From Oopsacas minuta (Eukaryota > Animalia > Porifera): 64,000 nucleotides of DNA. The first letter of the stretch is position 1; each line of letters starts with the position of its first letter. The notes beneath the pieces are model-generated. The model saw only the letters and a program-made list of their open reading frames with translations, did not search any database and was not told where the DNA came from. The stretch lies in the NCBI GenBank assembly GCA_024704765.1, contig JAKMXF010000177.1, forward strand, positions 568,963 through 632,962, written 5' to 3'. Both the position numbers and the translations under genes were made by a program. Below are positions 17,201 to 55,322 of this stretch, piece by piece.

Positions 17201-20200
17201 AATCATTGTCTGTACTCGTATTAGCGGTGGTAAAATGAGTATTCGGGTTTCTTATTAGTTAGTATTTTTGATCATTTTCTGTAGTCTGCCAATATTTCAT
17301 ATGTGTGTTCCCTTTCTGTAGCATTTCCACTTGGATATTCCAACAAATTTTCTCTAAATAAATCTGAAAATTATAAATTGGTCCATGTGGCCCACCAAAC
17401 TATTGAGGAAGCCAATGTGGCCCGCAATTAAATCGAGTTGGGCACCCCTGATCTAACCCAATGCAAGACGATAATGCACGAAGTAATCTAGTTGTTGGAA
17501 GAAATAGACAATCCAATGATTGAAAAAACCGATAGCAAGCAGGTGAGATCAAATGTGCTTTCAAGGCGACTGCCTAGAATGAGTAAAAAGGGTAAAAAAA
17601 GAAACAAAATAGATAAGAAATGTAGAAACACTAACCTGAGTAACTACGTTATATCCCCTTTTGGTTGGTGAAACTAATGAGTTTCCAAGCTAACAAGTAA
17701 TGAACTGTAGGAGAGGTAACAAAGTAGTACCCTTTACATCATGCTCAGTTATTTCTGTATTTTCTAATATTGAGATTGATTATTGTAATTTGGTGACGGC
17801 CTCTTTGATATTTTTCTAGAAAAAACTGGATTCAAATAACTCAGGATTAGTGTAGTTTAGAATATCACCAATTAAGATTTCAATTCCGTATATCTGTTAA
17901 TCAACTGAGATTCAAAGGAACTTGGTGTTGGCAACAAACTGCTGAAACTGTTAAATCTGAATGAATTGATAAGGTAGATAGAATATGTATAGACTGATTG
18001 GCGAATTCCAGCTGTATGATCTCTAAGGTATTGCTAGAGGAGTACCAGATCGCCCAATCTTGGTTAAGGTGTAACTCTGGCAACTTAATTTTAAGATCCT
18101 CAAAATTCCCCAAACCGAACCGTAATGAATCTTGTTGATCTTGTATAATGCTATCATGAAGAGCTTTAGCAAAGTTTTCCTCTTCCTTAGATTCAAGATT
18201 TAAACGCTTTGCTATTTGACCAGTTATATTCAAGTATGATGGGCCTGCTTGGAAAATAATAGGCACTGCATTCGGACGATAAATTGGTCTAATGCGTGGT
18301 ATTTCAGAGCAGCAACCATCAGCTTGGAGTGCCCGGTCAACGTGGATAAGATCTTCCTCCTAAAATGGTGTATGCAAATGAATATCTTATCCTCTGGAAG
18401 GTCTTCGGCTAGATCCCTATGAAGAGCTCTAATCCACTTCCCTTTCAAGTCTTAGATCCTTTCGGTAAACTGAAAACAGTGCCAGTAGGGTGACCTCTGT
18501 AATTAGTTTTGCACCCAAATACAGAACATGTATTTAGCATTAAGAAGTGTCTAAAATACATGTGAATAAAAGAAAAAGGTAAAACGAAGAAGGAGGAAAT
18601 GTATAAAGACGAAAAATCAGGGAATTCCAATCACGGGACAAGTTTCCGGTAAAATACAGCATAGAATATTCCAAACAGTACCTGTGTTCATTTCATAATA
18701 TAAATTAATGATATAATCCAATTATGGTTTAGATGTTATGGGTTATTAATGATATTTTATTTAAATGACTTCTATCTCATCCCTGGTCCAATTTCAGAGT
18801 CGATTTCCAATTGAAATAGCCACATTTATCGTTTAAAGTTCATAAGTAATAATAAATAGCACAAAAACGAATGCACTTGTAGTTCATCCATGATCCAGTA
18901 TTTTTTGTTGTTACCGTCCTTATATTACGTAGTTCACGCCTTACTCAATTTGGACGGTAACATATATACAGTAGATGTCGGATATAAGAACACCAACTTG
19001 AATTACGGATACTTTTGTGTTCTATTCCATGGATTTTTTTACCGGTTATAAGAACATTCTATGCCGGATATAAGAACATCATAATAGAAAACGGTTACTA
19101 TATACCCTATATAAATTCTGCTGGTTATAAGAACACTCTTAGTGTAGTACTAAAATTGGTTCTCATTACCAGTATGTTTGTAGAAGTCGGGATTAATTAT
19201 ATAGTAGATGTGAGAATACTTTTCTTTAATATGGTTTCTACATCCAAATGTGATTAAATGAAGTGTTCTCATAACTGGCATCTACTATACTACATAGCGG
19301 TTATAAGAAAATTATGTCCAGTTCCCGACGATTTTCTTATAACTGACATTCACTGTACTGTAACTTTAAACTGGCAAAGAAACAAACTATTTATCATACT
19401 AAAGATGAGAATGCTAATTGAACTAACTTTTCTAAGTAGTTGATTCTTGTCTAATTTATCGATTGATCTATGATTATTTGTAGTTACCAACATTTGTACC
19501 TGATTACTTCATTATTTATGGCGAAGATTATCTAACTATCACGAATAAAGTGGAACAATTATATCTTGTCGAAAAGAAAGATGCTCTTACCCTTTTCTTC
19601 AATACAGAACCAGTAAGTAATTGTAATAGTTCCTAGTTAGTTAGTGTGTTCAGGGAATATCTCAAAGTCCGGGAACAGATTCCTTAGCAAGAAATTTCTT
19701 CACCAGTGTGTTTATAAGGGTGTCTACTAAATCTCAAAAAATTTGAATGCAACTCCCGTAGGGGAACCTAACCAAATTCTATAAACTGGAAATTGTCACC
19801 TGTGTCTCTCTCGAAATTATTCATAAGGGATAGTTACCAGGCTATTAAGACTGAAGATGTTCTGATCACTTTTGAGTGATTACAAATATCACAATAAACA
19901 TTAACATAGCCTACTCTATGAAATTAGATTCGATTTAAAGAGGAAAGGAGTTTATGCATTTTAACGTGTTCAAATATTCCTGGTGGTTGTGGATTCCTAC
20001 TTTCAGCAACTGTCATCGGGTACCCTATGGGAGTTGAATTTAAACTTATTGAAACATGTTAGTGAACACTCTTCAGGCGCGGTACGTCCCTTCGAAAAGT
20101 GCTACGGCGACAAATTCACAGTACAGTACAAACCGGTTTTTAAAGCAGCCCCTATAGGGAGATGCCGTGATGGTATAGACGATATGCCACGTCCGTAAGT

Positions 20201-23200
20201 CCGTCTGTGCTGCCCTGAGAAATCTGGTGCATTGCTGCATCAACACGTGCCCCTGAAAAGAACAAAAATACATAACCCTGAGCTGCACTTCCAGTTTGTC
20301 GGTTGGACATTTTTTCTTACTATTTCTTTACACGGAAAAACGAAATAATTACAATTGTACGGCGCTCTACGCACCAACCATACCGGGTATGCTGCCCCTG
20401 CCAATATCAACACATAGGTGAAGAAATTTCTTGCTAACGAATTTGTTCTCAGACTTTAGCTGTTTATTCACATTCCCTACTATCCAAAGATATTTCATGT
20501 AAAGGTTTACCTATACTGTTGCTGCATTTAAATTATCTTCACATACTGGAAAAGCAAAAACCTATTCAAGTATTCTGAATCCTCATTGACCGGAATGTAG
20601 CCAGAGACATGGGACAAATCTGACTACACCTCTGCTCATTGAAGACATTGACCAGATTAGATTATCATTTAAGAGTGTCTTAACTTTAAGGTGGAGCATC
20701 CTCTTCATATTCACTGTAACACAATAGATGTCTTATATGTAAGCCAAGCGCAGCAAGAATATATATTTGGGAGTAGCTGTGTGACTATACATAATTCGTG
20801 TTATATTACCTCCCTTTTATCCTTTCAAGCTTTAGGTCAGAAAAATGAACTGAACGTCTAAACCGTGTGTTATTTGAAATATATACACGGACATTCTATG
20901 CTATATAATATTGTTTTTGTTGTATTATTTCAATTATCTGCTTTAATATCAAATACATTTTCTTTAGGAAAAAGCATTGAAATCATTTGAATATGTATTA
21001 TATTCAATATTTCAAGAAGTTATCAAATACTTCATGGTACTTCACGATGAAATGAGCATTGAGCAGGTAATGTTAGTTGACTAATTCATTAATAATAGTA
21101 CTTACTTGTATAAATAGAAAATACTGAAAACTAATGCCTTTGTCGTCAAATTTGCCTATTTTCGGAATCATTTTGGTTTAGATTTGAAATACTCTTTTCT
21201 CTAGCTGCATTAGCTAACAAGCAAGCTTCGGCTTGTGCACACTTTGTGCACAAGCCGCGGAGCAATAAATTAAATATAATAATGAGTATATATATCCCGA
21301 CCCGAGTCCGAATCGTGTTTACTTTATAGATCCCGACCCGAGTCCGAATCTCAACACGAACTGACTGAACCAGGGACGTAGGGAGCAAGGTTATTGGTGC
21401 GCCTTGCCATTCCAGCTCCTACGGACTTGTGACTCCGCACCCTACCCGAAGGCATCTCCCTATAGGAGCTACACTAAAAAATGTTCAGCTGACATACTGG
21501 AGTCAGCTCGGACATCTGGGTTATGTTTTCACCCCTGATGAATAATGATTAGTCATTAGAAACAAATTAACAATATCATTTAAAATATGAGCGTAATGGA
21601 GTGAAAATGCGATTAATCATATGATAAAATATGTAGAAGTAGTTGTTAAAATATCATAATTGGAATCTACATACTTGGTTACCCCTGACTAACAGTCGAA
21701 ATGAAGTTTCTAACATCAAAATATATTTTGATGTTAGAAAGATTTAACAAATGATTAATCATATGAGAAATCTGTGGATTTTAAACTTTCAGACTATGAA
21801 AATGTCAAATTCGGACTCTACGCACCCAATTACCCCCGACGATACGTTGAAACCTAAACTCTAGCATGTCTTTGAATGTATATGTGTACCAATTGTCATG
21901 TGAATCCGACTGCTAGATTTTGCACGTCACACATTGTCTATGCCATAAGCGCATCTCCCTAAGGAACTGCACTAAATCATTGGGTTTTAATCAAGGTTGC
22001 AACCAAATAATATATGGCGAATTGTTCAATATTCGGTTTCCAACTGAATATCAGTATTAAGTATTCAGTCAGGCTGCTTTTCGTGAATACTGATATTCGG
22101 TTCTATCAGTTTCAACCTTGGTTAATTGTATATACAAGATGTAGCCAGGGACTTTTCTGGGAATAATTAGATGATTGCAAGGGACAAACTATCATTTCTG
22201 ATTTATTGGATTCATTAATACTATGTAGGTAGGGAAATGATTTCATCTTGTTTCTAGAAATTTTGCACTCTGATTGATTTTGTTAATAATGATTTTGCTA
22301 TGATAAATCAAGAGCTAAAGAACCTTACCAATCAAATAGCGACGAACAACTTGGGAGATGGAATTCTGCCCAATCTCATTCTAAATGATCGTTGCAGAAA
22401 CAATGAATTATTCCTAATCAGACTAATCTACCATGTAGCTGTTATGCTATCTTATAAGAAATATCACCAGCTGTTCCTACCTATTGCTTTGATTTATGAA
22501 AAACCTGAGACATTAAATGATAAGTTATTTCCTACTATGATGGATGATCAGTTTCTATTTACAAAGAATGCTATGACTGAAGGTGGGAAATGGTATGAAT
22601 GTCCTAATGGTCATCCCTACTTCATTGGAAATGTAAGTTTAGAGTAAACTATTCGGATAATAAAGAGATATATTAATCAATACTAATAAATCTCTGAATT
22701 TCCCGAATAGTTTTACTCTAACGTCACTTTCAAATTTCAAATTTTGACCACTGTTCCTATACAATTGCCCTATCCATCAATTGTATTCTGGATTTATTCA
22801 TGTTTTGTATCTAGTGTGGGAGACCTTGGGTGGTTTCTACATGTAGAGAGTGTGGCTCCCAAGTTGGTGGGAGTAGGCATAAATTAGATGATAAGAATAA
22901 ACTCCTCGATGTAGCTAAAAATGAAACTAAAACAGGATACTTCATTGGAAAAATGAACCATGCTACAACCGTTCTTGCAGGGGAAAGGTAATTTGTGTCT
23001 GAAATCAAATCAAGGAATTGATTATTATTATTATCATCTATAGGTTACTTGGCCCTGCATCAGTTAAGATAATCCGTGTATTGATTGACATCTCTTTCAT
23101 CTGGTCATCATGTTCTAAATACCCAACAGTTAGTAGCCATGTGCTTCCTTCTCTTGTGACAAAAGGATTAGATGACCCCAGAGATCTTCCTAACTTCTTC

Positions 23201-26200
23201 TATTTGCATCTAGAGAGAGATATTATGGATCTGGTAAAGCTAACTGGCAAGAACTTTGGTGAAGTTGTATTTTACCTCCATCTGATAATCAAATCCCTGA
23301 TGGAGACATCAGAACAAACATGTGAGTAGTAGTATTCTATATCAGCTGATCCAGCGTTCTGAGTTCTAACAATTGTTTTAGAATTAAGGGTTTATCGTTC
23401 CCCCAGTATAGGGTAGGCCGATAATTATTAGCTTAATTAAAAGTACCGGGTAATATTCATGATTGACGTTTTTGATGGAGCATACTTTATCCTAGTTAAC
23501 GAGCCTTTGGCTCATCGCTTTGCGATTAATTCGGTGCTTTGCGCCTCGATATAACCATTAATATCCTAATTGATTCATATTACATATATAAGTATATTAT
23601 ATCACGAAATCAACAGTAAATTTACATATGAGAAACTTCAAATACGAAATTCGGATTCAGCGTACTTTTTACCACTATTTTAACCTTTGCAAGCAAGTCT
23701 CTATGTATATCTTGAGATTTGACTCATCTCTTTACTACAGTAAAACCTGTCTTTTACGACAACCAGGGGTTCCAAGGAAAAAGTCCGTAATGACAAGTGG
23801 TCCTTGATCACAGGTTTGGAATAGCCATTCGTTTAATATTTATATCAGTCTCAACCTTTTCGAACTGGGGAATACTAAAAATTCAAAATTCGGTCAGGAA
23901 AGGTGGCATATTGTGGGGAACCTGTGATTCAAATTCCAAACTTCTATCACGTATATTAGCTGAGCTGTAGTTAATAATTTGATTATTCGAAAATCCAAAA
24001 AGGTGACAATGATCTTGTCCGAACCAGGCCCAAAATCAGCCCTTGGTGCCTTCCAGTTTCTCCAATCAATTCTGGACATATATATATATATACTAGCGCG
24101 CTTCGCTTTCTAGATCGCAGCGAGAGCTTAGTGCCCCAGGTTTGCTTAAGTATTAATTAAATAGTTCAAAAGTGGTATTGGCTAAGTTGTATAATACGTG
24201 ATCAATTTTGACGTCTTATCCGTCTAGGATAACCTGAGATATGAGATTTAACATTGTTCTACTTGTATAAGCCAAATTATTATCAAATATTATATAATTT
24301 GGTCAACTTATACTGAGAATTCTCATTAACAATTATAGAACTACTGTTATGATGGATAATACTTATTGCAGAAATCAGCCTAATATAAATTACGTCACCA
24401 AAAATTGTAAATTGAACGTATAACATATTATAGTAATACGTCTTCATTGAAAGATGTATTAACAAATACTCGGAACTACGTGCCTTGAATTCACAGAATA
24501 GATAAATTTTAAGATTTATTATCCATGATCCATCCAAATTACATTTACCGGGTAATTCAAAAAAATGCAACCCAAAAGTAAATGTTTGCAGTGAAGACAA
24601 TTCTTAATCAAACTCAATCAAACTCAGAACATACGTAGAATATCTATATTTTTAGTACATATTAAAAATTCAGCGTACTACAGTCAATATTTTATGAATT
24701 AGAGCAAATGTTCCAAATGACCTCCTTTGAGTTCTGTACATTTCTTGAGTCGTACCACCAAGTTGTTCATGACATTTTTGCATACAGTGGTCGGAATCTT
24801 TCTTATTTCTTCTCTGGTGTTTTCCTTCAACTCGCTGATGGTTCTAGGCTTAGTAGAATAAACTCGGTCTTTAAGATAGCCCCACAAGTAGAAGTCAGGA
24901 GGGTTTAAGTCGGGGCTATAGGGGGCCCACTCAAAATTCGTCTTGAGACTGATGACTCTTGCTCCAAAGTGTTCTTTGAGCCAGTCCCTGGAGAAATTTG
25001 AGGTGTGTGAGCTCGCTCCATCTTGTTGGAACCAAAAGTGATTCAGAAGTGATGAGTAGAAGACTCTGAGCTGCTCCCAGAAGAGCTCAAGGACCTGGAC
25101 ATAATGTTCTTTCGTAACTGTAACAGCCCTGTCATTTTCTTCAAAAAAGAATGGTCCTATGATCCCTTTCGCCGAAATGGCTGCCCATACTGTGCATTTT
25201 TCTGAGTGTAGTGGTTTCATTGCAACTTCCATTGGTCTCTGGGTTCCTCAGAACACGTTTGTCTTGGAGTTGATTTTTCCATTTAGGCGAAAGTGGGCTT
25301 CATCGGACATCCAAAGTAGTGAAAGAAATCGGTCCTGACATTCAATTTTTTCTAACAAATTCTTGGACATTTTAAGCCTTTTGGACTTATCACCAGCTGT
25401 TAACATCTGTTTTGTTTGTATACGATATGGAAACCTCTTAAGATCATCAATTAGGATCCTCCTGATAGTGCTTGCAGATATTTTTCTATCCAATGACAAT
25501 GATTGACTCCTCCGCCTGATTGACCGTTTTGGACTGAATTCAACAGAATTTCGGACCATCTCAATAACTTTTGTTGGTCGTTTCTTTCTCCGACCAGAAT
25601 GCGTTAGTCTGTCATCACACTTACTATTGAGGTTTTGAACTGTCCCATACTTCCTAAACTTCTCCACCCAACGATAGATCATCGATTTATCGGGAGCAAC
25701 TTGGGTCTGGAATGATGTACGAAATTGCGTCTTTACAGTCTCGTATGAGGAGATATTAAAATAATGTTCCACGCAGAAAATTCGGTGTTGCAGTATCCAA
25801 TTTGGCATTTTCTGATCGTTTAGACTCAAACTAATTATAATCAAAAAGAATAAATAGGATTAGTTAAGAAATAAAGATAGGGTACCCGTAAAACATTTTG
25901 GGTTGCATTTTTTTTGAATCACCCTTTAATGGCCTTCTGTGATGACACTGGAGATGCTATGTCACTTGTGGTTAGTACTCTTGGCACTTCGTGCCTCGGC
26001 TAATAAGAAATTCTGAAATTTTAGAAATTGGGAGAATTTTGATATTTTTGTACAGTCATGATGACGTGATAATCTCCTGATGAGTTAGCTTTAGTCTAAA
26101 TCATGACATCAGAACATGTGACATATTCATGGGTACTTGTGATTCAAATTTCAAACTTCTATCATTTATATTGCTGAGCAGTGGTTAAGCGAATATTTTA

Positions 26201-32057: not shown

Positions 32058-34061
32058 CTAATTATTTACATTCAAATACTCGTTCTGCAAATCCTTGTAC
32101 AACTCCATTGCGGCGATGGGATCAGCACCCAGCATGAAAGCAGGTGGCAAGGTACCAGATCTGTTCTCTAGCTGAGTACGGACTAACAACATCTCATTAG
32201 GTACACTTAGTCTGGTAACTATATCTTTCATGTCAGGACGCTGATTAGCTCTAGGATGCCAAGTGTCAACCATAAGTTCATATATAGCACGAGAACAGCC
32301 AGATGGAGGGGGAAGGTTTACTCCCCGTGCCATCTTCTCCACGGTGCTCCTGTTGTCCTCATATGGCCATGGCTGCCTTCCCACTGACCAGATCTCGTAT
32401 AAAAGCATACCGTAGCTCCATACGTCACTCTTGAGAGTGAAGCGCTTGAAGAAAACTGCCTCGGGAGCAGACCACTTGACTGGAAGTTTGTTGCTTCCTT
32501 TTACCTTGTAATAATCTGATTCAGTTTGTAAACGTCGTGACATGCCAAAGTCTGCAATCTTACAGACAAATTTGTCTGTTAAGAGAATATTCCTTGCAGC
32601 GATATCTCTGTGGATACATCCTCTCTCAGCGAGGTGCTGCATTCCACTTGCCACCTGTCTGCTGACGGAGAGGAAGTGAGGTGCTATAGTCTCATAGTCT
32701 AGTTCTTGATTGTGTTGTGTCTGTAGATCGATTAGGAAACGTTTCAGTTCTTCATGCATGAGTTCGGTCACTATCATGTTTGGTACTGTCAATGTCACCA
32801 CCCCAACTAACCTCAGTATGTTAGGATGCGAGAACTGACCCAAAATAGCAGCTTCTTGTAGCAAAGCAGTCTGTGATTGCTTATCAATATCCTGGTTCAT
32901 TACTTTCACAGCCACATTCAAATCTCCTACAGGACTTTGCCATATACCCTTATTTACTTCCCCAAATTCTCCTGATCCTAACAGTTCCTGGATAGATATA
33001 GTTTCTTTGTTGATTTCTAGGAGTTTTTCGTTCGACATTTGGATATACAGATCCTCTACGTTATCAGAAGGTTCCCAGTATATTGCTTCAGCTTTTGACA
33101 AATAATCATCTTCAGCTTTATCCATACTTACGAATCGAGTATAATATAGTGACTGTTTTTTTGCATTATGATTGGAATTACTCAATTTCCTTTGTTCTAG
33201 CGTCGGAACCACGACGTAACTGACAGTCCCTGAAACGTTCGTGGAATTAGAATTAGTGCGAATATGTGAAATTTGATTTTCAATAGTTTGTTCTAAATCA
33301 GCACTAATACGAACAGGCTTGGTTTCCCTCATTTTACGATAGAGATCTTCACTGTTATTGGTATAGCACCTAAATGAATACAGATTCTCTGTTTCTATAT
33401 CAACATAATCATAATCCTTGAAATTTACCTCAGCGTATACAGATTCAATTCCTGGATTAAAATGTAATTGTGACTGAACCAATGGATTTATTGTTACAGA
33501 ATTAACGTTTTGTATTGGTATACTCTCTTGGGGATTTACACATGCGAAAGGGTGATCAGATTTCTTCTTTCTTACAACTATCCACAGTAGAGGAACGCAA
33601 GACAATGTTACCAACGATATTATGACCAGTATTATGAAGATAGCCACGGCTAAAATAATCCAAACTATATTTCTATTTTCAATAAAAGTATTGTCTACTA
33701 ATAAAAACCCTGTACAGAACAAATCTTTTGTGACTTCACCCGTCCGAATGTTAGCAAAGCTGCAATTACAATCCACGCTGTTTATAGCTTTAATTACTAA
33801 CAAAGACTTTTCCATACAAGTTAAGACATAGTTATTTAATAAAGAATCTGTTGTATTGCTGAAATCATGAGGGATAAATTCATTAAATATAGCTGGAGAG
33901 CAAAACATGTCGTTTAAGTCAATCCAAGGTACTATATCTTGAAATCCGATGTTAACATTACATAATACCTGACATTCAATGTTCACGAAGAAGAGAGAAG
34001 TTAGGAAGAAGACAAGAAAGATATTGTTCATTGTTTTAGAAAATAGAGAACCAGTTCTCAT
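32058..34061 (-). CDS. Single-pass receptor tyrosine kinase (Eph-like kinase domain), intronless, 667 aa
   Basis: Signal-peptide-like NIFLVFFLTSLFFVNIEC; ~100-aa Cys-containing ectodomain; TM WIILAVAIFIILVIISLV; Tyr-rich juxtamembrane; GSGEFGEV, VAVK, HRDIAARN, DFG, PVKWSAPE, SDVWSYG. Confidence 0.95.
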   Translation of the reverse strand: MRTGSLFSKTMNNIFLVFFLTSLFFVNIECQVLCNVNIGFQDIVPWIDLNDMFCSPAIFNEFIPHDFSNTTDSLLNNYVLTCMEKSLLVIKAINSVDCNCSFANIRTGEVTKDLFCTGFLLVDNTFIENRNIVWIILAVAIFIILVIISLVTLSCVPLLWIVVRKKKSDHPFACVNPQESIPIQNVNSVTINPLVQSQLHFNPGIESVYAEVNFKDYDYVDIETENLYSFRCYTNNSEDLYRKMRETKPVRISADLEQTIENQISHIRTNSNSTNVSGTVSYVVVPTLEQRKLSNSNHNAKKQSLYYTRFVSMDKAEDDYLSKAEAIYWEPSDNVEDLYIQMSNEKLLEINKETISIQELLGSGEFGEVNKGIWQSPVGDLNVAVKVMNQDIDKQSQTALLQEAAILGQFSHPNILRLVGVVTLTVPNMIVTELMHEELKRFLIDLQTQHNQELDYETIAPHFLSVSRQVASGMQHLAERGCIHRDIAARNILLTDKFVCKIADFGMSRRLQTESDYYKVKGSNKLPVKWSAPEAVFFKRFTLKSDVWSYGMLLYEIWSVGRQPWPYEDNRSTVEKMARGVNLPPPSGCSRAIYELMVDTWHPRANQRPDMKDIVTRLSVPNEMLLVRTQLENRSGTLPPAFMLGADPIAAMELYKDLQNEYLNVNN

Positions 34062-34764: not shown

Positions 34765-34911
34765 CAGTGGAGTCTCCCAAAACGGAAACCTCGTGCCACG
34801 GATTGAATTTGCCAAGCATGTAATACTTAAGCAGTCTCCGAGTAGCGGATAATTCTCTACAACGGACAGATACTATGTCCCCAACGTGTCCGTTATTCAG
34901 AGGCTCCACTG
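34765..34911. mobile_element. pogo/Tigger-type MITE
   Basis: TA|CAGTGGAGTCTC ... GAGGCTCCACTG|TA. Confidence 0.8.
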
Positions 34912-36437
34912 TAACATATTAATGTTGTCTGGACAAATTTTAATGGATTATGTGAATGCGATCCATCTGGAAGATGTGCCAGTGGTGGTTGTTTTAGCAC
35001 TAATATAGTACGTATAGTTTGAACCACTATACTATAGGCAGTGGCGCGGTAGTTCCACATCCGCCAGTTATGCGTAACTTTCCGTGTAATTGAATGCATT
35101 AATATTTACTTCTGGCGCCACATTAACTTCCTCGGATCCATATCCACAGCACTGAGGCACTGACTATATGTATGGTTGGATCGGCAGAGTAATAACCCGG
35201 ATTTTCGTATCCCGAATGAAGTCCGTCGAGATTCGGGATTCAGAAGCGAAAAGTTTTCAATAATTATTATTTCAATGGAGGCATCGACCAGAAAAGCGTA
35301 CGATAATGCTCAATATTATAACTTGTATGGTCAATTCTAGGTTGATAGAGCATACGAGCTATATCACTGATTTTTAGATAAGATTAAATACTATCGAGGG
35401 TAAGATGCGAGTAAAGCGAGCCGAAAATTTCCAGTTTGCAATTTAAGCGAAGGCGGTGACATGCCCCGAGTCAAATATCACTTTGACATTGAGCTATAGC
35501 TGGGTGAAATTCCTCCGAGGCACATTAGCACATAAACCGATACGCCTGGAAGAAGCCTGAAATGTATCCATTTTTCATATACGTAAAGCACAAAGCAAAT
35601 AGGAAAATTGTCCAAGTAAATGTGTATTAGGCGGTTTTGAGAAATTGTTTCAAGATTCAAATCAAGATGGCAGTACAAAGGTAATTAATGTGGTAGCTAT
35701 TATAGCTTATTGTCCAAGGGATCACACAGATAATACTGGAAGACATACAGCACCCCAGACCCCCAGCTAGAGTTGCCACGCGCATATGCAACTGGGAGCC
35801 CTCAAATATTCTCCGAGCTACATATCATTACTCCATGGGACTAGTAAAACCAAGTTTTTGGGGTAATTGCAGACCAAACGTTATTTCTTTCATTGTTTCG
35901 CTCCTGGACTTACTGATTTACTGATTGTTTACAGCACACATAGGCTTTGAAATCTGGGAGTGCAAAAATTCAATCTGGTAGGTAACGTCTAGAACTTGTT
36001 GACAACCAGATTGAATTTGTGCACCCTAGATATCAAAGCCACACGACCCCACTGCTCAGCTGGATGGTTATCGTACTCAACTAAAAATTTATAGACCCGC
36101 CACTAGGCATGCTCTTGCTAAACCCACTAAACACCTTGCCCACCGTCCTGCTCCTTGGAACTTCGTGCACCCTGATAATTTTTTGGCCCCCCCCCCCCTT
36201 AGGTGAAGTATCTGGCGATTCCCCTGCCCATACCCGCGGGCATCCCTCTCCAGGGCAGCGCTGTATATTAGTTAGCGAAGGTAAAACCAATTTATCTATA
36301 CAATTTGATATCTCTCTTACGAATAAAACTGGTATATTGTCAACTTATCAAATCTACACATGACAAACGTTCAGTATACACAAGTAAATAATATAATTGC
36401 TTGTCGCTGTGTTACATGGAAAGTTCCTTCTCGAATC

Positions 36438-37094
36438 TCAAGTCATGAATATCAGTTTGGAGCATCTGTATCCAAATTTTAATGGCATGTTCAGGATCGA
36501 AAAAGCGATCAAAAACAGGAAAAGTAATATCGAAAACCATCCACGCTTTCTCTGAATTTGCTTGTTGTTGCTAACTTGGATTGGCTGGGGGAAATTGAAA
36601 CTTCCTTGTGATGTCACAGACCGTCTCTCCACCTCACTGCCTCCAAATTCGCTCTCTGTTTTTCTATCATACCAATCAGGGGAGTTGATGTCAGAAAATC
36701 TCTGAGTTTCATAGGTAAATGCTGAAGAGTCTGAATCGCTACAAGAATCATTCCTTATTCCCTGATAAATCTCATTATCATCGATCTGTTCTTCTGACTT
36801 GCTGCTACTTCTTGCAATTATCGTTCTAGCCAGCTCCGCGTGCTGAGTATAACTGCTATCACGTACTACAATATCTAAGAAAGGATAAAATCCTCTCCTC
36901 TCGTCTTGTAGATACTTCACCAGAGCGAGGTTCTGTTTCCTAGGGCTAATTATGTTGCTTATCTTTTCTCTTTCATCCTCCCACATCAAACTTGAATTCA
37001 CAAGCTCATCTCCAATCCTTTCGAAATTCAACTTACTAATGATTATATATTCATAAGTGTAGAAATTCATGTAGGATTTAGTAAAGTCACTCAT
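36438..37094 (-). CDS. CARD/death-fold protein with C-terminal transmembrane anchor, 218 aa
   Basis: Residues ~5-95 fit the CARD helical pattern (IISKLNFERIGDELVNSSLMWEDEREKI..RKQNLALVKYL..FYPFLDIV..HAELA); Ser/Asp-rich linker; RKRG-WFSILLFLFLIAFSIL near the C-terminus; no signal peptide. Confidence 0.75.
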   Translation of the reverse strand: MSDFTKSYMNFYTYEYIIISKLNFERIGDELVNSSLMWEDEREKISNIISPRKQNLALVKYLQDERRGFYPFLDIVVRDSSYTQHAELARTIIARSSSKSEEQIDDNEIYQGIRNDSCSDSDSSAFTYETQRFSDINSPDWYDRKTESEFGGSEVERRSVTSQGSFNFPQPIQVSNNKQIQRKRGWFSILLFLFLIAFSILNMPLKFGYRCSKLIFMT

Positions 37095-39766
37095 TTTTTG
37101 TATCGTGGGAATTATGTAAATATGTAAATGAGTTCACTATACTTGTTATCGTATTTATAGTGTAAGGACAACGTTATGAGACATATGTATGTACTGCCCA
37201 ATAGAGCATATTGTCTCTAATTATTCAATTAATTATGACTGACTTGTCTGGTAGTGATATTTTTGACGCAACTTTATACGAGTAATACACAATACATACA
37301 TTCGCAATTTTAATTACCGACCAAACCTATAATTTTGATTATTCCCCATGACTCTCGTTTTTGTGATTAATTCTAACACTGTCTAATTGAATATTGCATA
37401 TGGAATAACATATTAATTGCTACAGGCTATTAACCAATTGTCATTAAAATTATTTTGACGTATCTAATGTTAATTAATATCACGTATTACAGCATTAGAA
37501 CTTAGAAGTTCATCTAATCATTAATTCGTGAGAATAATTAAATATTAATTTTCATTAATAGCTTTTTCGTACAGATTTATTAACTGTCTGATTCTATTAG
37601 TCTGTATTCAGCATAATGATACAAGCAAAATAAATAAGATTTTATGGCGTATGATTATCAAGAGTATCTGCCTTGTCTGGCCACTTTAAAATTGGAATCG
37701 TTTAGAAATGTGTGCAAATTAATAGGCTAATGAATGGAAATATCATGTAAATAGCTTGTACATGATAGTGACTGCAATATCTTCTTTATCTCCAGTTACT
37801 ACGCTTTCTTTATGGATAATTAGAAAACATTTATCAATTGTAATCTCTCTTTCAAAATAATATATTAAATATATAAACAAAAGGTCTGTTATATTATAAT
37901 TATCCATTCAGGAAAATCAAAAGATATTAAATTGTAATATTATATACACCTACAGTCGTACACATTGTCTAAAAGTGTTTTACTAATAAATTGCACTATA
38001 ACTCCCATGATGACTGTTATGTCAGCTATCATATTCCAGTATATCATTCTCCCGCTAACAATAAGAAATATAAGATGTTGAAATTTATAACGTGTTAGAA
38101 TTTATCGAGACATAATTGTATTATGGGTTGATATTGTGGGTTATGTAATATATTGGAGTCATTTTGTATCCGAATTGACTCCAAGGATTTAAGTCGTTTT
38201 GATATATTTAATCATATTTTAGGCGCAGATTATTTTGGATAAATTTGTCTTTAGCTGCTCTAAAATTATTTTAATCATTGTAGTGCAGCTCCTACAGGCT
38301 GCCCTAATAGCATGGACGATGTGCGACTTCCGTCCGTCCGTGCGAAATGTAGCAGTCGAATTAACATAAAAATTGGGATACATATACCTTTTGGGTCGGA
38401 GATTTGCACCTCAGGTATGCATGTTTTCTAAAGTGAATATTTCACACCTTTTGATGATTAATCATATTTTCTCACCTTTTGGATATTATTCAAAATCACG
38501 CTAAAGATTTCGTTTGAACTGCTAGCAAGGGGTAATCGAGTATGTAGACTAAATATATTGATATTCATAATAGCTAACACAGTTTGTATAGTATTTAACC
38601 GAAATTATTTCTCAGAGTAAGGAGCCCTAAATTTGGGCTGGTGCAGTGTGGTATAGACTTATACACGGGGGGCGTCAGCGGGAGCGTGGCCCTCTTGAAA
38701 GAACATAAACAACTAATCCTAAGCTGCATTCCCAGTCTGTCGGCTAAACATTTTACTGTACCGAGTATAGTGGCTCAGTTCTAAAATGGTTGACTTAGTA
38801 TTTATATGTTTTTCGCTCTGCTTTTCACACCTTTAGAGATTAAGACACCAAATTCGGCATGTATACTCGTAGTGACTTCTAATTTTCCACCTGATATTTG
38901 GAAAATTTCTAATGTGTATATTTTCACACCTTTTGATACTTCTGTATTTTAGCCCAATCAGTTGGTAGGGATTTACAATTAGGCATAAACGCATACAATT
39001 AGTTCTGGTGGAGTGTTTGTAATTTAATTAGCACTGTGAAGTATTTGTAATGATGTATACTGCAATTCTATTAACTAAGACATTCTATTAAGTATATATA
39101 TACTGATTTATCATATGATTAATCATATTTTCACATCTTTTGGTGAAATTTCAAAATTATCTTAGAGATTAGCTTCCACTTGTTAGATAGGGGTAAACAG
39201 AGACGTATAATTCTATTCTAACATTTTGGAATGTCTAACAGATTATTAAAATTCAATTTTATATTTGCTAAAATGAATATTTAGTAGAATAGCATAATTT
39301 CAATAATCTAATAAATTAATTTGGTAAATTTAAGTCGGCACAGATGGTGATTTGAGATTTTTCATTGTCATCTGATCTGTGGATATCAGTGTTATGTGCG
39401 TGTTGGACCATCATCCAATCTATTTATGTCTTGGCCTATTGTTTAGTATTGTATAATTATCAAGGTTCGAAAAAATATACTTGGATTATTCTTATTTTCT
39501 AATTTGGAATTTTTTCATAAACTTGAGTGGAAATTCCTGGAATTAAGATTAAATAATACAACCTATTGGATTTCGTTTAGGTTCATATTGTATCTTCTGC
39601 CTCTGGGGTGTCACTATAGAATAAAGTATGTAGTATAATATACGGATTGATAATAAATACAGCAATACTTCAATTTTGAGTTTTTGACTTATACAAAAAT
39701 AAGCTTAATTAAAACATGCGAAATTAATCAAATGAATATGCATACAATACGGAAATTATCATAAAT

Positions 39767-42268: not shown

Positions 42269-43180
42269 ATGGCTGGAGTAACACATTTAATACCTGATAG
42301 AACAGAGGAAAAATCAATATTGAAAGCTATGAAAGAAAATAGTACGAAAATTACAATTGAATGTAACAATGAAATGGATATGTATTACTTTCCAGCAAAG
42401 AAAATATCAGTCAGTGAGTATCAAAAGGTAACAAGGAAGAACCTGAAAAAGATAATCATGGTGGGAGAAACTGGAAGTGGGAAAAGCACACTAATCAATG
42501 CATTCGTTAATTATGCGGCTGGAATAGAAATAGAAGATCCATTAAGATTCAAGTTAGTTAATCATGAAATTGAACTTCAAACAAGGGAGATATCTGGATA
42601 TCTCATTGAGGATACTTTGTTCGAATATCCCATCATGATATGGGATACTCCAGGATTTAAGTTTGCAAATGGGAGAAAGATAGATGAAAAGATAGAACAA
42701 CAAATTCAAAAGCTACTCAGTGTAGAAGATGAATTTCATGCAATATGTTTTGTGATAAAGGCAGACGTAAACAGACTGACAGATGTACAAAATCTCATCA
42801 TTGATAATGTGAAACGCTTATTTGGGAGAGAAGCAGAAAAGAACATGTACACTCTCACTACATTCGGGTACGGTGATCGTCCAGAGGTGCTGAGAACTTT
42901 AATGAGAAGCAATTTCCCATTCGATGAAAACCGTTGGTTCACATTCAACAACAGACATTTATTTAAAACTGAATCTCAAAGGTGGTTCGGTTCTAAAATA
43001 TATTGGGATATCACTATTAACAGCATTATCCAATTCCATAATACACTAGCCCATCAACTACCATTCGGAATAACAAGAGAAACTAGAAAAGCTAACGTCT
43101 TCGGATATATGAAAGTAGAAAGTGATGAAGATTATTATGCTGATTATGTAGAAGAATTAAGCTCTCCAGAGAACAAATGA
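42269..43180 (+). CDS. TRAFAC P-loop GTPase, septin/AIG1(GIMAP)-like, intronless, 303 aa
   Basis: G1 GETGSGKS, G2 QT, G3 DTPG, HAICFVIKA, RLT..Q..I..LFG, TTF at G4, FTFNN. Confidence 0.85.
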   Translation: MAGVTHLIPDRTEEKSILKAMKENSTKITIECNNEMDMYYFPAKKISVSEYQKVTRKNLKKIIMVGETGSGKSTLINAFVNYAAGIEIEDPLRFKLVNHEIELQTREISGYLIEDTLFEYPIMIWDTPGFKFANGRKIDEKIEQQIQKLLSVEDEFHAICFVIKADVNRLTDVQNLIIDNVKRLFGREAEKNMYTLTTFGYGDRPEVLRTLMRSNFPFDENRWFTFNNRHLFKTESQRWFGSKIYWDITINSIIQFHNTLAHQLPFGITRETRKANVFGYMKVESDEDYYADYVEELSSPENK

Positions 43181-48995: not shown

Positions 48996-51900
48996 TCAGA
49001 ACGTTGGTCGGTTGAGAGAGAGAGGAGCGATAGGATTGAAAGGGAATTGTGGATTCGTCTTGAGAAGATACTTAGGATCTGCGGAGATATCTACTATATT
49101 AGTCCTAGCCTCTTTAGAGGAGGCCGCTCTGACAGGAGGGGGAGTTAGGTTGGGATCAGTGACAGGGTTGAAAGGTAGAGAAGGCTTAAAATCTTCAAGA
49201 GTAGTGCTAGGGAGATCGCATATCTTCTTCTTATACTGCAGCTGGTATTGAGGAGGAGGTGGAGGGAGAGGGAGAGAAGGGTTACCGTTGAAATTAGTAC
49301 TATGAGAGATAGCACCAGATACACGTAGTGGTATACGAGATGGAACTGGCAATGAGTGATTCATGGAAGAAGCAAGGGGTTGTGTACGAGTTATAGCTCT
49401 GTCATTGAGTTGCTTATTCAGCCAGGATATCACATTTTCATTCGTTTTAATCTGTTCTTGACACTCAAATAATTCCTTCTTGCTCTGTTCCAGCTCATGT
49501 CTAGCTGTCTTACTCTCCTCTCTAAGTCTAGAGCTCTCCTTTTCCACAAGCTCTAACTCATTAGAAACTCTCTTCATTGATATTTCTCTCTCAGCTATAG
49601 CCTTCTCTTGCTCCATAGTTACTGTGTTTTTTAATCTGAGTCGTGTTTTAGTATTATGCAGCTCCTGTTGCAATTTCTGTATTATTTCATTGCCTTTGTT
49701 AACTTCCTGAGAAGCGGTCTTAACAGCTTGCTCCAGCTTCCCTACCATCAACTGTTTGTGTTGTACAGCTGTTTCAAGTCTCGTACGATCAGCTGTGAAT
49801 TCTTCAATAGTTTGAGAGCTCCTGAACAGCTGTTGTTCTCTCTCTGTACTGTTCTGCTCTAAAGTGGTTAGTTTAGTAGTCATTCTTCTTAACTCGTCTG
49901 ATTGATCTTCTGCCCGCGTGTGAGAGCTCATATTCTGTAACCGAGTCTGACTGAGAGACTCCTGCAACTCTTGACACCTGAAATAATATCAAACTTAGCA
50001 TATTATTGATTTAACATTAACTATTGAGAATTAGTAAAGTAGAAATCGGATAGTACGTAAGATATAATTCATATTAATAAATTAATACGAACTAAATTTC
50101 TGATCCAAATTCATCAACATATACAGTTAACATTTGATAACTCGAACCCTCAGGGGAAATTCTGTACGAGTTAATGAATGCTGACTGTATAACTATGCAA
50201 ATTCTCTCACTTAATATGAATACGTGTATAGTTTATACAGATCGAATGTACATTTTTGGTCACCGAGAAGGCATTTAGTCTTTAGTATTTTAAATCCTAC
50301 CTTATTGAAAAAGTTTCTTTCTCTTTCTTACTCTGTTCTAGAGATGTTTCCAGCCTCAATACTTGTTCTCTCAGGTCTGTTAGTCTGTTCTCTAACTCCC
50401 TCTTCTCCTCTCCCCGATCAGTTCCCTCTTTCTGGAGACGAAGTTGTAACTGTCTCTTCTCTGTCTCAACCCTCTCCAGGAGATGCTCCTGCTTCTTGTG
50501 GCTGTCCTCTCTTTCAGCTCGGAGCTCTTGCTCGTTATGCAAAGACAATTCACTCACTCGTGTCCTTACCTCCTCTTGGAGTCGATGTAGTTCAGACTAG
50601 AAGAAAGTATATTAAATAAACAATAGAAGGTTGCGCAGCAAACACTGCGCATGTGTGTGTTGCGAGCACCATGCTGAAACCGCATCAGGAAGATAATCGG
50701 GTTTATTTACTATAATCTGGCTTATAGATTACATCCGTGTCTAATCAATGATACCCCAGAATATATCCCCTTAGCCCAGTAAATGATACTAGCACATTCC
50801 CAAGAGGTGTAGCATTCACGCTGAACCATTAAAAATGTGTCCAGATAACTATAATACCCGAGGAGTATTCTAAAGATTATATCTGGGTATATTCTGGGCT
50901 ACTACACAGCTTCCGATGCATATGGTTCTCGAGTGTACGCATGCGCAAGCCTTTTCTATCCGTATGCACAGTTGACTATTACATATACAGTGCTACCTTT
51001 ACAAACGGGGTGTAGGATGGAGAAAAATGCTACCCGTCCATTCGAACAGCTGTTCCAATTGCAAAATAATTCGTTCGGATTAGTGAAATGCATAGAAACA
51101 ATACTATAGAATCTAGTGGAGATTTTTTCGAAAGTTGTACAAAGGATGAAAAGCCTGCCATGCGGCAACATGTGTAATATAGTAATATATATTACACATA
51201 TTGCCGCATGGCAGCCTTTTCATCCTTTGTACAACTTTCGAAAAAGTACACAGTAGAACTGGATACAATTAATTGTTTTAGAACATTTTCCAAAAGTTGT
51301 ATAACTTTTCTGACCTGTTCAGATTAGGAAGGTATAATATATTGTACTTCAATCGAATCACTCCATTTCAAGATGTTCCCGTTTGTGGAGGTTACACTGT
51401 ATGGAGTAACACTAAAGTATATTAACTGAAATTTGCCCATTTTTGGTGAAATTTGATAGGATTCGTGTAAATAATGTAACAAACATTTTCAAAGAAAGCA
51501 ATGCGTCACCATTACAAAATAATACCTCCTGCTGTGCTGCAGCTGCTCTGGAAGCTGACATGTGTCTAGTGAGCTCGTCCTTAGACACAGCAAGCTCCTC
51601 AGACAATCTACCATTCTCAGTCTTATAGCTCCGCAAGCACTCAGCTAGATATTCCTTCACCGTCCTGTCTGTACCAGGCAGAACCCGCAGTGATAGGTGT
51701 GTCAGATGTTTGAAAGGATTCGTCTCTACTACCTCGAATACCGTCCTACCCTCTCCAGCCTGAATCAGCTGTAGTACGAACTTAGGTTGTTCTTTACTGT
51801 GCTGAGCTCTGCATAGAGTCAGCAGTTCTATTAGTTTCTGAGGGAAAGATGCAAAGTCTATGAGCAGGCCCTGTTGACTCTTCAGATCAGAATACTCCTC

Positions 51901-52092
51901 CTCTGACAGAGCTAGAGTGTGGAGAAAGAATGGATCGCTGTCATCTGTCAATCTCAGAATGAGTTCTTGGGAAAATGGAGAGGCAGATGATGCTGCGTTC
52001 TTAGAGAACACAGATATTCTGATTCTTACGAATCTCTCCTCAGAATTCAGTTTGGTTAGGACAGGAAGTTCCTGAGAGAATAACTCTTCCAT
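48996..52092 (-). CDS. SASS6: Centriole cartwheel protein SAS-6, 3 exons, ~614 aa
   Basis: complement(join(48996..49977,50301..50596,51526..52092)); phases 0 and 2 consistent, 1845 nt. Head domain LRLTDDSDPFFLHTL..DLKSQQGLLIDFASFP..ETNPFKHLTHLSL, long coiled coil (NEIIQKLQ..LKN..QEK..NENVISWLNKQLN), Pro-rich tail. Confidence 0.93.
51124..51245. other. 58-bp-stem hairpin in SAS-6 intron 1
   Basis: 51124-51181 pairs with 51188-51245 with two mismatches; 6-nt loop GTAATA. Confidence 0.9.
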
Positions 52093-54125: not shown

Positions 54126-55322
54126 TTAATATCTCTGCAAGCAGCCTTTGCCTTCAATGCCATGATTTACACAGATAATATTATCTGACTTATCTAATAC
54201 AATACCGCATAAGAAATAGAGATGTCCTCTACCCAGAATATGCTTCATCACTCCTTGAGGTGAGAAGATACGGATTTCGTCAGCAGAATTGTCTGTAATT
54301 AAGAAGTTCCCCTTCTTATCAATCGTGAAGAAGAAAGCTTCTATCATTGGCTGATCCTGTCCAGTTAGCTGTATAATATTCTGGAGAATACAGCCTCTGT
54401 TGTAGCAGTGGATGGAGTTGTGGTCTAGAGATAGGATGTAGATTCTGTCAGAGATTACTGTAATGTCTATTGGATAATTGAGTTCTCCGTTGCCGAACTG
54501 TTTAATGAATTTAAAATTAGAATCAAATATTTGAATTCTTTGCATACTACCATCACAGACATATATTAACCCAGCTTCATGACACAATCCTGCGATACCA
54601 GTAAATCGCCCTTCTGTAGTGCCTCTTGAGCCTGTTTCCTTTAGGAATTGTCCTGCTAGGCTAAACTTCACAATAGACTCTTTAGCTCTATCAGTAACGA
54701 ATACTTCTTCTTGTGACAGACATATATAGTGCGGCTCCTTCAAATCGTCAGTCCCAAAAGAACGTAAATACTTTCCTTCAGCATTCAACACTTGAATCCG
54801 TCTGTTGCCTATGTCACAAATGTAAAGTACATTCATTGCTCTATCTACAGCTATTCCTGTGGGATTACTCAATTCTCCACTTCCCCTACCACGCTTACAA
54901 ACCTTTTTGATGGGATTTTCTCTCTTTACATATTCGGGACTAACTTCAAACAAATCAATTTCCTTCACAGCAGATCTAATTTTTTGAGGATAGCAACGAA
55001 ACTCAACCATCTCCAAGTTATCTACTGCTACTTTTGAATTTTCTAATCCTACCAACTGGTCATCGAATAATTTTCTCATCGGGTCTAACAAATTGCTCTT
55101 CATTGTTTTTTGAGCATTTTCTTTGGTAAATTTCAGTTCTTTGATTGCTTCGTCCAAATTTAGATTTTTCTCATACCCCTCTTTCACTTTGGCAAGTCTA
55201 GTCAGTAGGCTATCCCTGTGTTCCGAGAGAAATGCGAAAAGTTCATCAAAATTTCGGATAATTTCCATTTTGAGAGCTTCCATTTTTTGTTCGGAATTAA
55301 ACTCCTCTATTACTTCAGCCAT
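54126..55322 (-). CDS. Coiled-coil + NHL-repeat protein (TRIM-NHL-like without RING/B-box), intronless, 398 aa
   Basis: N-terminal coiled coil (EIIRNFDELFAFL..); NPTGIAVD..LYICDIGNRRIQVL and further NHL repeats. Confidence 0.88.
   Translation of the reverse strand: MAEVIEEFNSEQKMEALKMEIIRNFDELFAFLSEHRDSLLTRLAKVKEGYEKNLNLDEAIKELKFTKENAQKTMKSNLLDPMRKLFDDQLVGLENSKVAVDNLEMVEFRCYPQKIRSAVKEIDLFEVSPEYVKRENPIKKVCKRGRGSGELSNPTGIAVDRAMNVLYICDIGNRRIQVLNAEGKYLRSFGTDDLKEPHYICLSQEEVFVTDRAKESIVKFSLAGQFLKETGSRGTTEGRFTGIAGLCHEAGLIYVCDGSMQRIQIFDSNFKFIKQFGNGELNYPIDITVISDRIYILSLDHNSIHCYNRGCILQNIIQLTGQDQPMIEAFFFTIDKKGNFLITDNSADEIRIFSPQGVMKHILGRGHLYFLCGIVLDKSDNIICVNHGIEGKGCLQRY

Follow-up and report, generated by a model that had tools for sequence, protein, structure and literature searches.

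A small CARD protein with a predicted C-terminal membrane anchor in the glass sponge Oopsacas minuta

The 64,000-nucleotide stretch of Oopsacas minuta DNA analysed here (assembly GCA_024704765.1, contig JAKMXF010000177.1, positions 568,963 to 632,962 of the forward strand; hereafter the window) carries on its minus strand, at positions 36438-37094, an intronless gene whose product, judged from its sequence, is a small CARD protein of 218 amino acids (aa) with a predicted C-terminal membrane anchor, i.e., a protein with the layout of human MAVS and CARD19. A first-pass annotation of the window had proposed that this is a MAVS-like adaptor encoded next to RNF213. We consider it likely, with a probability of roughly 0.6, that the protein is instead a lineage-specific tail-anchored platform that recruits its partners by CARD-CARD assembly and shares the architecture of MAVS and CARD19, orthology to neither of them being demonstrable.

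The gene, its CARD and its predicted anchor

The first-pass annotation had read a CARD-like six-helix pattern at the N-terminus, and our comparisons lead to the same domain: the N-terminal domain is a CARD, weakly but consistently by sequence, where the signal stays below the Pfam cutoff, and clearly by modelled structure. For residues 1-95, the sole family match is Pfam CARD (PF00619), with an E-value of 0.05 and a score of 14.1 bits versus a cutoff of 23.9. The same Pfam family is the only one matched in all four members of the protein family that were found first (best E 1.4e-4), and it was matched again in six of eight further members, the best of them at 21.7 bits (E 2e-4). Compared with PDB chains, a profile built from four sequences found the BCL10 CARD at E 0.0014, and a profile of thirteen sequences gave E-values of 0.02-0.08 for BCL10 (E 0.04), an MDA5 CARD and two designed proteins, of which one is based on the CARD of Apaf-1 and the other is CARD-like in fold. 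The AlphaFold2 model of the domain, built from the thirteen-sequence alignment, has a predicted local distance difference test score (pLDDT) of 90.4 and a predicted template modelling score (pTM) of 0.81. Its helices (residues 7-13, 15-21, 24-33, 39-46, 51-64, 69-78 and 83-99) form a six-helix bundle in which helix 1 is kinked into 1a and 1b, as in CARDs, and its nearest solved structures are CARDs over the death domain (DD), death effector domain (DED) and pyrin domain (PYD) folds.

The structural comparison was done in two ways, exhaustively with an earlier full-length model and by Foldseek with the domain model. When the full-length model was aligned with 48,161 PDB representatives, the top 30 rows were all CARDs or CARD-template designs (Z 7.6-11.1 over 66-92 aligned residues), and the DD and DED folds ranked lower. 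The CARDs in these rows include those of Apaf-1, caspase-9, CED-4/CED-3, MDA5, a chain of the RIG-I 2CARD-MAVS CARD complex, NLRC4, NOD1, Dronc, ARC, CARD9, ASC, BinCARD and BCL10. With Foldseek, 48 of the top 50 rows are CARDs, with probabilities of up to 1.00 and template modelling (TM) scores of 0.6-0.73, and in the ESM Atlas Pfam CARD is carried by each of the ten nearest clusters.

On these comparisons of models and profiles, no CARD subclass stands out. Pfam CARD_2, the MAVS/RIG-I type, is matched by no member at E 1-10 or below. The closest folds are the CARDs of Apaf-1, caspase-9 and CED-4 (Z 9.7-10.6, Foldseek probability 1.00, TM 0.64-0.73), but those CARDs are carried by soluble NB-ARC ATPases or proteases and share only 13-20% of residues with the sponge domain. 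BCL10, which gave the best CARD match at the level of sequence (profile E 0.0014), is of similar overall size and has a Ser/Thr-rich region after its CARD, but it lacks a membrane anchor; since its match weakens to E 0.04 in the wider profile, it is read as general CARD similarity and not as orthology. A BCL10-type subfamily was thus dropped, and no CARD subfamily is assigned.

The anchor is predicted at the other end of the protein. Residues 185-201 form one hydrophobic helix with a 17-residue Kyte-Doolittle mean of 2.51, the sole strongly hydrophobic stretch of the protein. The next best segment anywhere scores only 0.45, and a signal peptide is therefore absent. Before the helix stands QRKR (net charge +4 across 10 residues), the tail after it has 17 residues and a net charge of +3, and the linker between CARD and helix has pLDDT below 50 across residues 100-182 in the full-length model. 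The single helix near the C-terminus in the absence of an N-terminal signal sequence is the arrangement of a tail-anchored protein. It recurs in all 16 sequences of the family described below, where the CARD-linker-anchor layout is kept throughout, the helix lies 12-20 residues from the C-terminus between basic flanks, and no other hydrophobic segment is present; helix hydrophobicity ranges from 2.1 to 3.1 and tail charge from +2 to +5. The C-terminal position of the anchor is also that of MAVS, and a CARD followed by a transmembrane helix and a short C-terminal segment within ~180-220 residues is the layout of CARD19/BinCARD-2, with the helix nearer the C-terminus in the sponge protein.

The minus-strand open reading frame (ORF) starts with an ATG at 37094, and the features that the first-pass annotation had listed for it (218 aa without introns, a Ser/Asp-rich linker, a hydrophobic segment with basic flanks, no signal peptide) were all found where it had placed them. 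The features of the gene are as follows.

36438-37094, minus strand: complete coding sequence in a single exon, 218 codons plus a stop at 36438-36440; start and stop positions are kept in homologues
36798-37076, minus strand: CARD domain, residues 7-99, from Pfam CARD matches, the model with pLDDT 90.4 and structural neighbours
36543-36797, minus strand: Ser/Asp/Glu-rich linker, residues 100-184, predicted to be disordered
36714-36737, minus strand: acidic phospho-type motif DSDSSAFT, residues 120-127, with the core [DE]S[SG]x[FY][ST] from the family alignment
36570-36584, minus strand: PIQVS, residues 171-175, the TRAF-type motif of the first-pass annotation, read from the sequence
36492-36542, minus strand: predicted transmembrane helix, residues 185-201, GWFSILLFLFLIAFSIL, from hydrophobicity and the modelled helix; conserved in 16 of 16 members
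36441-36491, minus strand: basic C-terminal tail, residues 202-218, net charge +3, with a conserved MPLKxGYKCSKFI pattern
37152-37159, minus strand: TATA box TATAAATA, 65 nucleotides (nt) upstream of the ATG, read directly
36364-37130, minus strand: probable extent of the transcript, 5' end approximate, from the depth contrast in run X4

Comparative sequence evidence indicates that this is a real, intronless sponge gene under purifying selection. Against the closest homologue, P0002, the synonymous divergence (dS) is 0.76 and the ratio of non-synonymous to synonymous divergence (dN/dS) is 0.25; the CARD taken alone has a ratio of 0.18, the linker one of 0.31 and the helix with the tail one of 0.34, and therefore all three parts are constrained. 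Each of the six family loci checked has a canonical TATA box, at a distance of 47-87 nt upstream of the ATG. Four sequencing runs were compared with positions 34800-39200, with depth taken from contigs. Over the gene and its unique flanks, the depth of runs X1 and X2 stays flat (48 and 171, respectively), and one X2 contig spans 36187-38418. In run X4, which comes from the same sample as X1 and X2, contig depth is 430-880 over 36364-37151 and ~10 over 37152-38180, i.e., a ~70-fold contrast. This depth pattern suggests that X4 is an RNA library with little genomic background, and the gene is probably transcribed. Whether the stop is real or lies in a retained intron was the doubt attached to the first-pass annotation. 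The X4 contig covering 36364-37007, which runs past the stop codon by 74 nt, agrees with the genome with neither a difference nor a joint, so that, with X4 taken as RNA, the transcript would be unspliced and the helix truly C-terminal; a stop 12-20 residues after the helix in all 16 homologues supports a real C-terminus as well, and so does a 986-nt contig of another run that includes all of paralogue P0011 and is exactly colinear with its genome. Run X5, recorded under a different organism code, contains a copy ~94% identical over 36345-37205.

The opposite view, that the ORF is a chance reading frame or a pseudogene fragment, could be based on the high-copy repeats that flank it (34800-36270 and 38181-39200) and on there being no run on record as RNA. 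However, it would have to account for 16 homologues of the same length class and architecture, the dN/dS of 0.25, the conserved TATA box, the single-copy depth in the DNA runs and an X4 depth peak limited to the gene, and it is effectively refuted by the homologues, their shared architecture and dN/dS.

The sponge family and its linkers

A word search returned three homologues of 219-237 aa with 49-66% identity, and a profile search of 1.84 billion representative proteins returned nine matches and eight true clusters: five full-length relatives (subfamily A) and three proteins of 269-274 aa matched in the CARD only (subfamily B). P0013, a repetitive protein of 1152 aa with 12 stretches and many spurious Pfam matches, was considered as a member and discarded. 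With the cluster mates of the profile matches included, the family set comprises 16 sequences. Its only named member is Oopsacas minuta KAI6661095.1 (UniRef A0AAV7KJI4), automatically annotated as 'CARD domain-containing protein', and because this sole named member is from Oopsacas minuta, the family is taken as hexactinellid; as far as can be seen from the sequences collected, it appears to be restricted to glass sponges (Hexactinellida). Nothing written was found on the family beyond the automatic label of KAI6661095.1, the Oopsacas genome paper does not mention CARD domains, and a tblastn search of the window revealed no second member.

The locus of KAI6661095.1 is intronless, and its gene order (FYVE - kinase - CARD gene - Nrap - 249-aa gene - Amidohydro_2) is shared with another assembly. 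In one genome, 3.3 kb separate two subfamily-A genes, and the same contig carries a subfamily-B gene at a distance of 650 kb. The convergent pair of subfamily-A paralogues with this 3.3-kb spacing, at locus L003 of a glass-sponge assembly, consists of P0007 (223 aa) at 10001-10672 (plus strand) and a 239-aa gene at 13990-14709 (minus strand); the latter is taken as P0009 from its size and the shared contig, and P0009 has a 17-residue N-terminal extension, probably a mis-called start. In loci L002, L003, L004 and L006, the subfamily-B locus included, the CARD gene has a large FYVE-domain gene 6-8 kb upstream of it, which suggests that the subfamilies arose by segmental duplication including the FYVE gene. 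At L004, the subfamily-B gene P0011 (10001-10825, plus strand) is ~9 kb from a gene (19846-20825, minus strand) whose product, longer than 2000 aa, has RdRP together with AAA_11/AAA_12 helicase domains, as in an RNAi-type amplifier; the case is a single one.

Between the two subfamilies, the linkers are unalignable except for one acidic motif, [DE]S[SG]x[FY][ST], which stands at an aligned position in 14 of the 16 members and in both subfamilies; subfamily A reads DSDSSAFT, and subfamily B has DTESGIYS or NESGIFS. It is known that DSGxxS is phosphorylated by IKK-type kinases and recognised by beta-TrCP, and as a low-confidence lead we note that the sponge motif may resemble this phosphodegron; the fit is good in subfamily B, and subfamily A has Ser in place of Gly. 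An FFAT or phospho-FFAT reading of the same acidic-aromatic motif was rejected, fitting one subfamily at most when judged by eye, and the LC3-interacting region (LIR) motif, [WFY]xx[LIV], is not conserved in the linker. Straight after the acidic motif the window protein has YETQ (residues 127-130, positions 36705-36716, minus strand), which fits the YxxQ pattern by which STAT3 docks on gp130; five of ten subfamily-A members have YETQ or YDTQ, and subfamily B has neither.

The PIQVS sequence, in which the first-pass annotation saw a TRAF-binding motif, is present at residues 171-175, but PxQx[ST] occurs in this one member out of 16 and in 4.8% of shuffles of the window protein. KAI6661095.1 has PIEVS, and the other subfamily-A proteins have S, L, V, I or F in place of the initial P. 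A search of the 16 members for PxQx[ST], Px[QE]x[ST], [PSAT]x[QE]E and PxExx[FYWDE] found none conserved at a homologous position, and one or more of three common TRAF motif types turn up in 46% of the shuffles; TRAF motifs were thus abandoned as evidence. The TRAF6 motif is found in none of the 16 members, the pLxIS pattern in two only, at non-homologous chance positions, and the window protein has no proline-rich region.

Genomic surroundings

The gene lies within ~1.9 kb of unique sequence between the high-copy repeats mentioned above, whose summed contig depth (34800-36270 and 38181-39200) runs into the thousands versus 48 and 171 in unique DNA; the repeats have many variant joints, and there is a run of ten G on the minus strand near 36200. 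The RNF213-like stretch (6462-8212) next to which the first-pass annotation had placed the gene is ~28 kb away, with transposase remnants and a kinase gene in between, and no RNF213-type neighbour was present in the four related loci examined, so that adjacency to RNF213 is not meaningful. The kinase gene (32058-34061, minus strand), 2.4 kb downstream of the CARD gene and on the same strand, encodes in a single ORF a receptor-type tyrosine kinase of 667 aa (PK_Tyr_Ser-Thr, E 3e-80), which has a hydrophobic stretch internally, near residues 138-158. A conserved kinase neighbour was considered and rejected: the window kinase shares only 24% identity with the one next to paralogue P0011, and therefore there is no synteny.

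A Tc1/mariner-type transposase is split at 24699-25844 (minus strand) into an HTH/DUF4817 part (25248-25844) and a DDE_3 part (24699-25232) and is probably a decayed copy. An ORF for a 303-aa AIG1/GIMAP-like GTPase (PF04548, E 5e-10) is located at 42269-43180 (plus strand); such GTPases are often expanded in invertebrate immune repertoires. The ORFs with a SAS-6 N-terminal domain (51412-52092, minus strand, E 2e-32) and with an NHL-repeat beta-propeller (54126-55322, minus strand, E 2e-14) are ordinary genes that support animal nuclear DNA with long single-exon stretches.

Possible roles and their meaning

If the protein is a lineage-specific tail-anchored CARD platform, it would be inserted post-translationally into an organelle membrane with its CARD facing the cytosol, and the platform fixed in this way would recruit other sponge CARD proteins through CARD-CARD assembly, its activity or turnover possibly being controlled by phosphorylation of the [DE]S[SG]x[FY][ST] motif of the linker. 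In mammalian cells, a strongly hydrophobic helix together with a positive tail shifts tail-anchored proteins from the endoplasmic reticulum (ER) towards mitochondria and peroxisomes (PMC5450235). The helix hydrophobicity and tail charge of the sponge family fall between the mitochondrial/peroxisomal and ER classes of that study (PMC5450235), whose rule is mammalian and may not hold in sponges; under mammalian rules, the helix and tail would fit mitochondria or peroxisomes better than the ER, with no one organelle named. The sequence cannot tell an activator of CARD partners from a restrainer.

Several observations weigh against such a platform. None of the members reaches the Pfam CARD gathering score (21.7 bits at best versus 23.9), the thirteen-sequence profile finds CARDs in the PDB only at E 0.02-0.08 with unrelated matches interspersed, and the Foldseek E-values are weak (at least 0.06), as is usual for small helical bundles. 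Two run searches found no run recorded as RNA, so that expression rests on the X4 depth contrast, and the X4 contig depths are crude. Finally, KAI6661095.1 lacks most of the linker, the conserved motif included, and its locus rules out an annotation artefact; the motif is thus not essential to every member. It is possible, at distinctly less than even odds, that in the syncytial body of glass sponges a convergent MAVS-like tail-anchored CARD on mitochondria or peroxisomes nucleates CARD filaments and couples cytosolic sensors or ROCO/NLR-CARD-caspases to death or NF-kB-type outputs, with an IKK/beta-TrCP-type phosphodegron of the linker as an off-switch.

The name 'MAVS-like adaptor' is justified as regards architecture and not supported as regards a specific link to MAVS. 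In MAVS, too, the CARD is N-terminal and on the cytosolic side, and a long non-globular middle separates it from a C-terminal anchor; the logic of a membrane-fixed CARD-CARD platform is presumably shared as well. A true orthologue or functional equivalent, taking signals from the CARDs of RIG-I-like receptors (RLRs) and passing them through TRAFs bound to PxQxS on to NF-kB and IRF, would agree with this order of parts, with PIQVS in the window protein and PIEVS in KAI6661095.1, and with the MAVS and MDA5 CARDs being among the good structural matches (Z 9.4). The linker of such a protein can differ from that of vertebrates, as it does in oyster MAVS, in which a CARD is followed by a death domain and a transmembrane helix and which binds RIG-I and TRAF6 (PMC5557890). 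However, the death domain of oyster CgMAVS (PMC5557890) is absent from the sponge protein, as is the proline-rich region of vertebrate MAVS. With 218 aa, the sponge protein is under half the size of human MAVS, and its family, found in glass sponges only, has no CARD_2 signal in any member and no conserved TRAF2/3, TRAF6 or pLxIS motif in the linker, the PxQx[ST] motif being as rare among members, and as common in shuffles, as given above. No true match outside the sponge family was obtained among the 1.84 billion proteins; MAVS appeared neither there nor in the PDB profile searches, and the CARDs of Apaf-1, caspase-9 and CED-4 match the fold at least as well as that of MAVS. We therefore consider a MAVS orthologue or equivalent quite unlikely. 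The more general part of the first-pass proposal, a compact CARD protein with a C-terminal membrane anchor and of an uncharacterised family in an early-branching animal, here a glass sponge, is supported.

CARD19, which the first-pass annotation overlooked, is at least as close an architectural match as MAVS and is nearer in size and simplicity: it is a small protein of 183 aa (218 in the sponge protein) in which, as here, one transmembrane helix and a short C-terminal segment follow an N-terminal CARD. MAVS and CARD19 are the two CARD proteins known to be integral to the outer membrane of mitochondria, and the helix and distal C-terminus of CARD19 direct its mitochondrial targeting, with the CARD facing the cytosol (PMC8997538). 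By this precedent, the sponge protein could be a CARD19/BinCARD-2-like outer-membrane protein with a structural or regulatory role in mitochondria (e.g., in cristae or contact sites) rather than a signalling adaptor, and the BinCARD CARD has the highest residue identity in the structural list (22% over 76 residues, Z 7.9). Yet this Z is below the 10.6 of Apaf-1, the likeness is one of fold without a detectable sequence relationship beyond it (neither the PDB profile searches, up to E 10, nor the search of 1.84 billion proteins gave a BinCARD/CARD19 match), the helix of CARD19 sits closer to the middle of the protein and has 37 residues after it versus 12-20 residues in the sponge family, and CARD19 lacks the acidic Ser-rich linker and its motif, all of which makes the CARD19-like role unlikely. 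There is also a small chance that the protein is a membrane-bound decoy or repressor similar to the CARD-only proteins and ARC, which would sequester CARD-caspases or an Apaf-1-like protein and so restrain death, in parallel to CED-9, which holds CED-4 at mitochondria. The best structural matches are the apoptosome-type CARDs (Apaf-1, caspase-9, CED-4/CED-3, Dronc), ARC and ICEBERG, and ARC combines a CARD with an acidic C-terminal region; but the Z differences between CARD classes stay within ~1-2 units and do not discriminate, and nothing in the sequence separates an activator from an inhibitor.

We know of no membrane-anchored CARD adaptor described in a non-bilaterian. The oldest characterised MAVS-like adaptor is that of a mollusc (PMC5557890). 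The sponge protein is an architectural analogue and does not constitute evidence that the RLR-MAVS axis is ancestral to animals; the claim is limited in that the family is restricted to a single sponge class and MAVS-specific motifs are lacking. If the convergent MAVS-like reading is true, membrane-anchored CARD platforms would be a recurrent convergent design of animals and not a bilaterian invention. The family offers a short, intronless and easily cloned candidate with which it may be tested whether CARD assembly tethered to a membrane was present in sponges or evolved there convergently, and what the CARD-caspase fusions of glass sponges dock onto.

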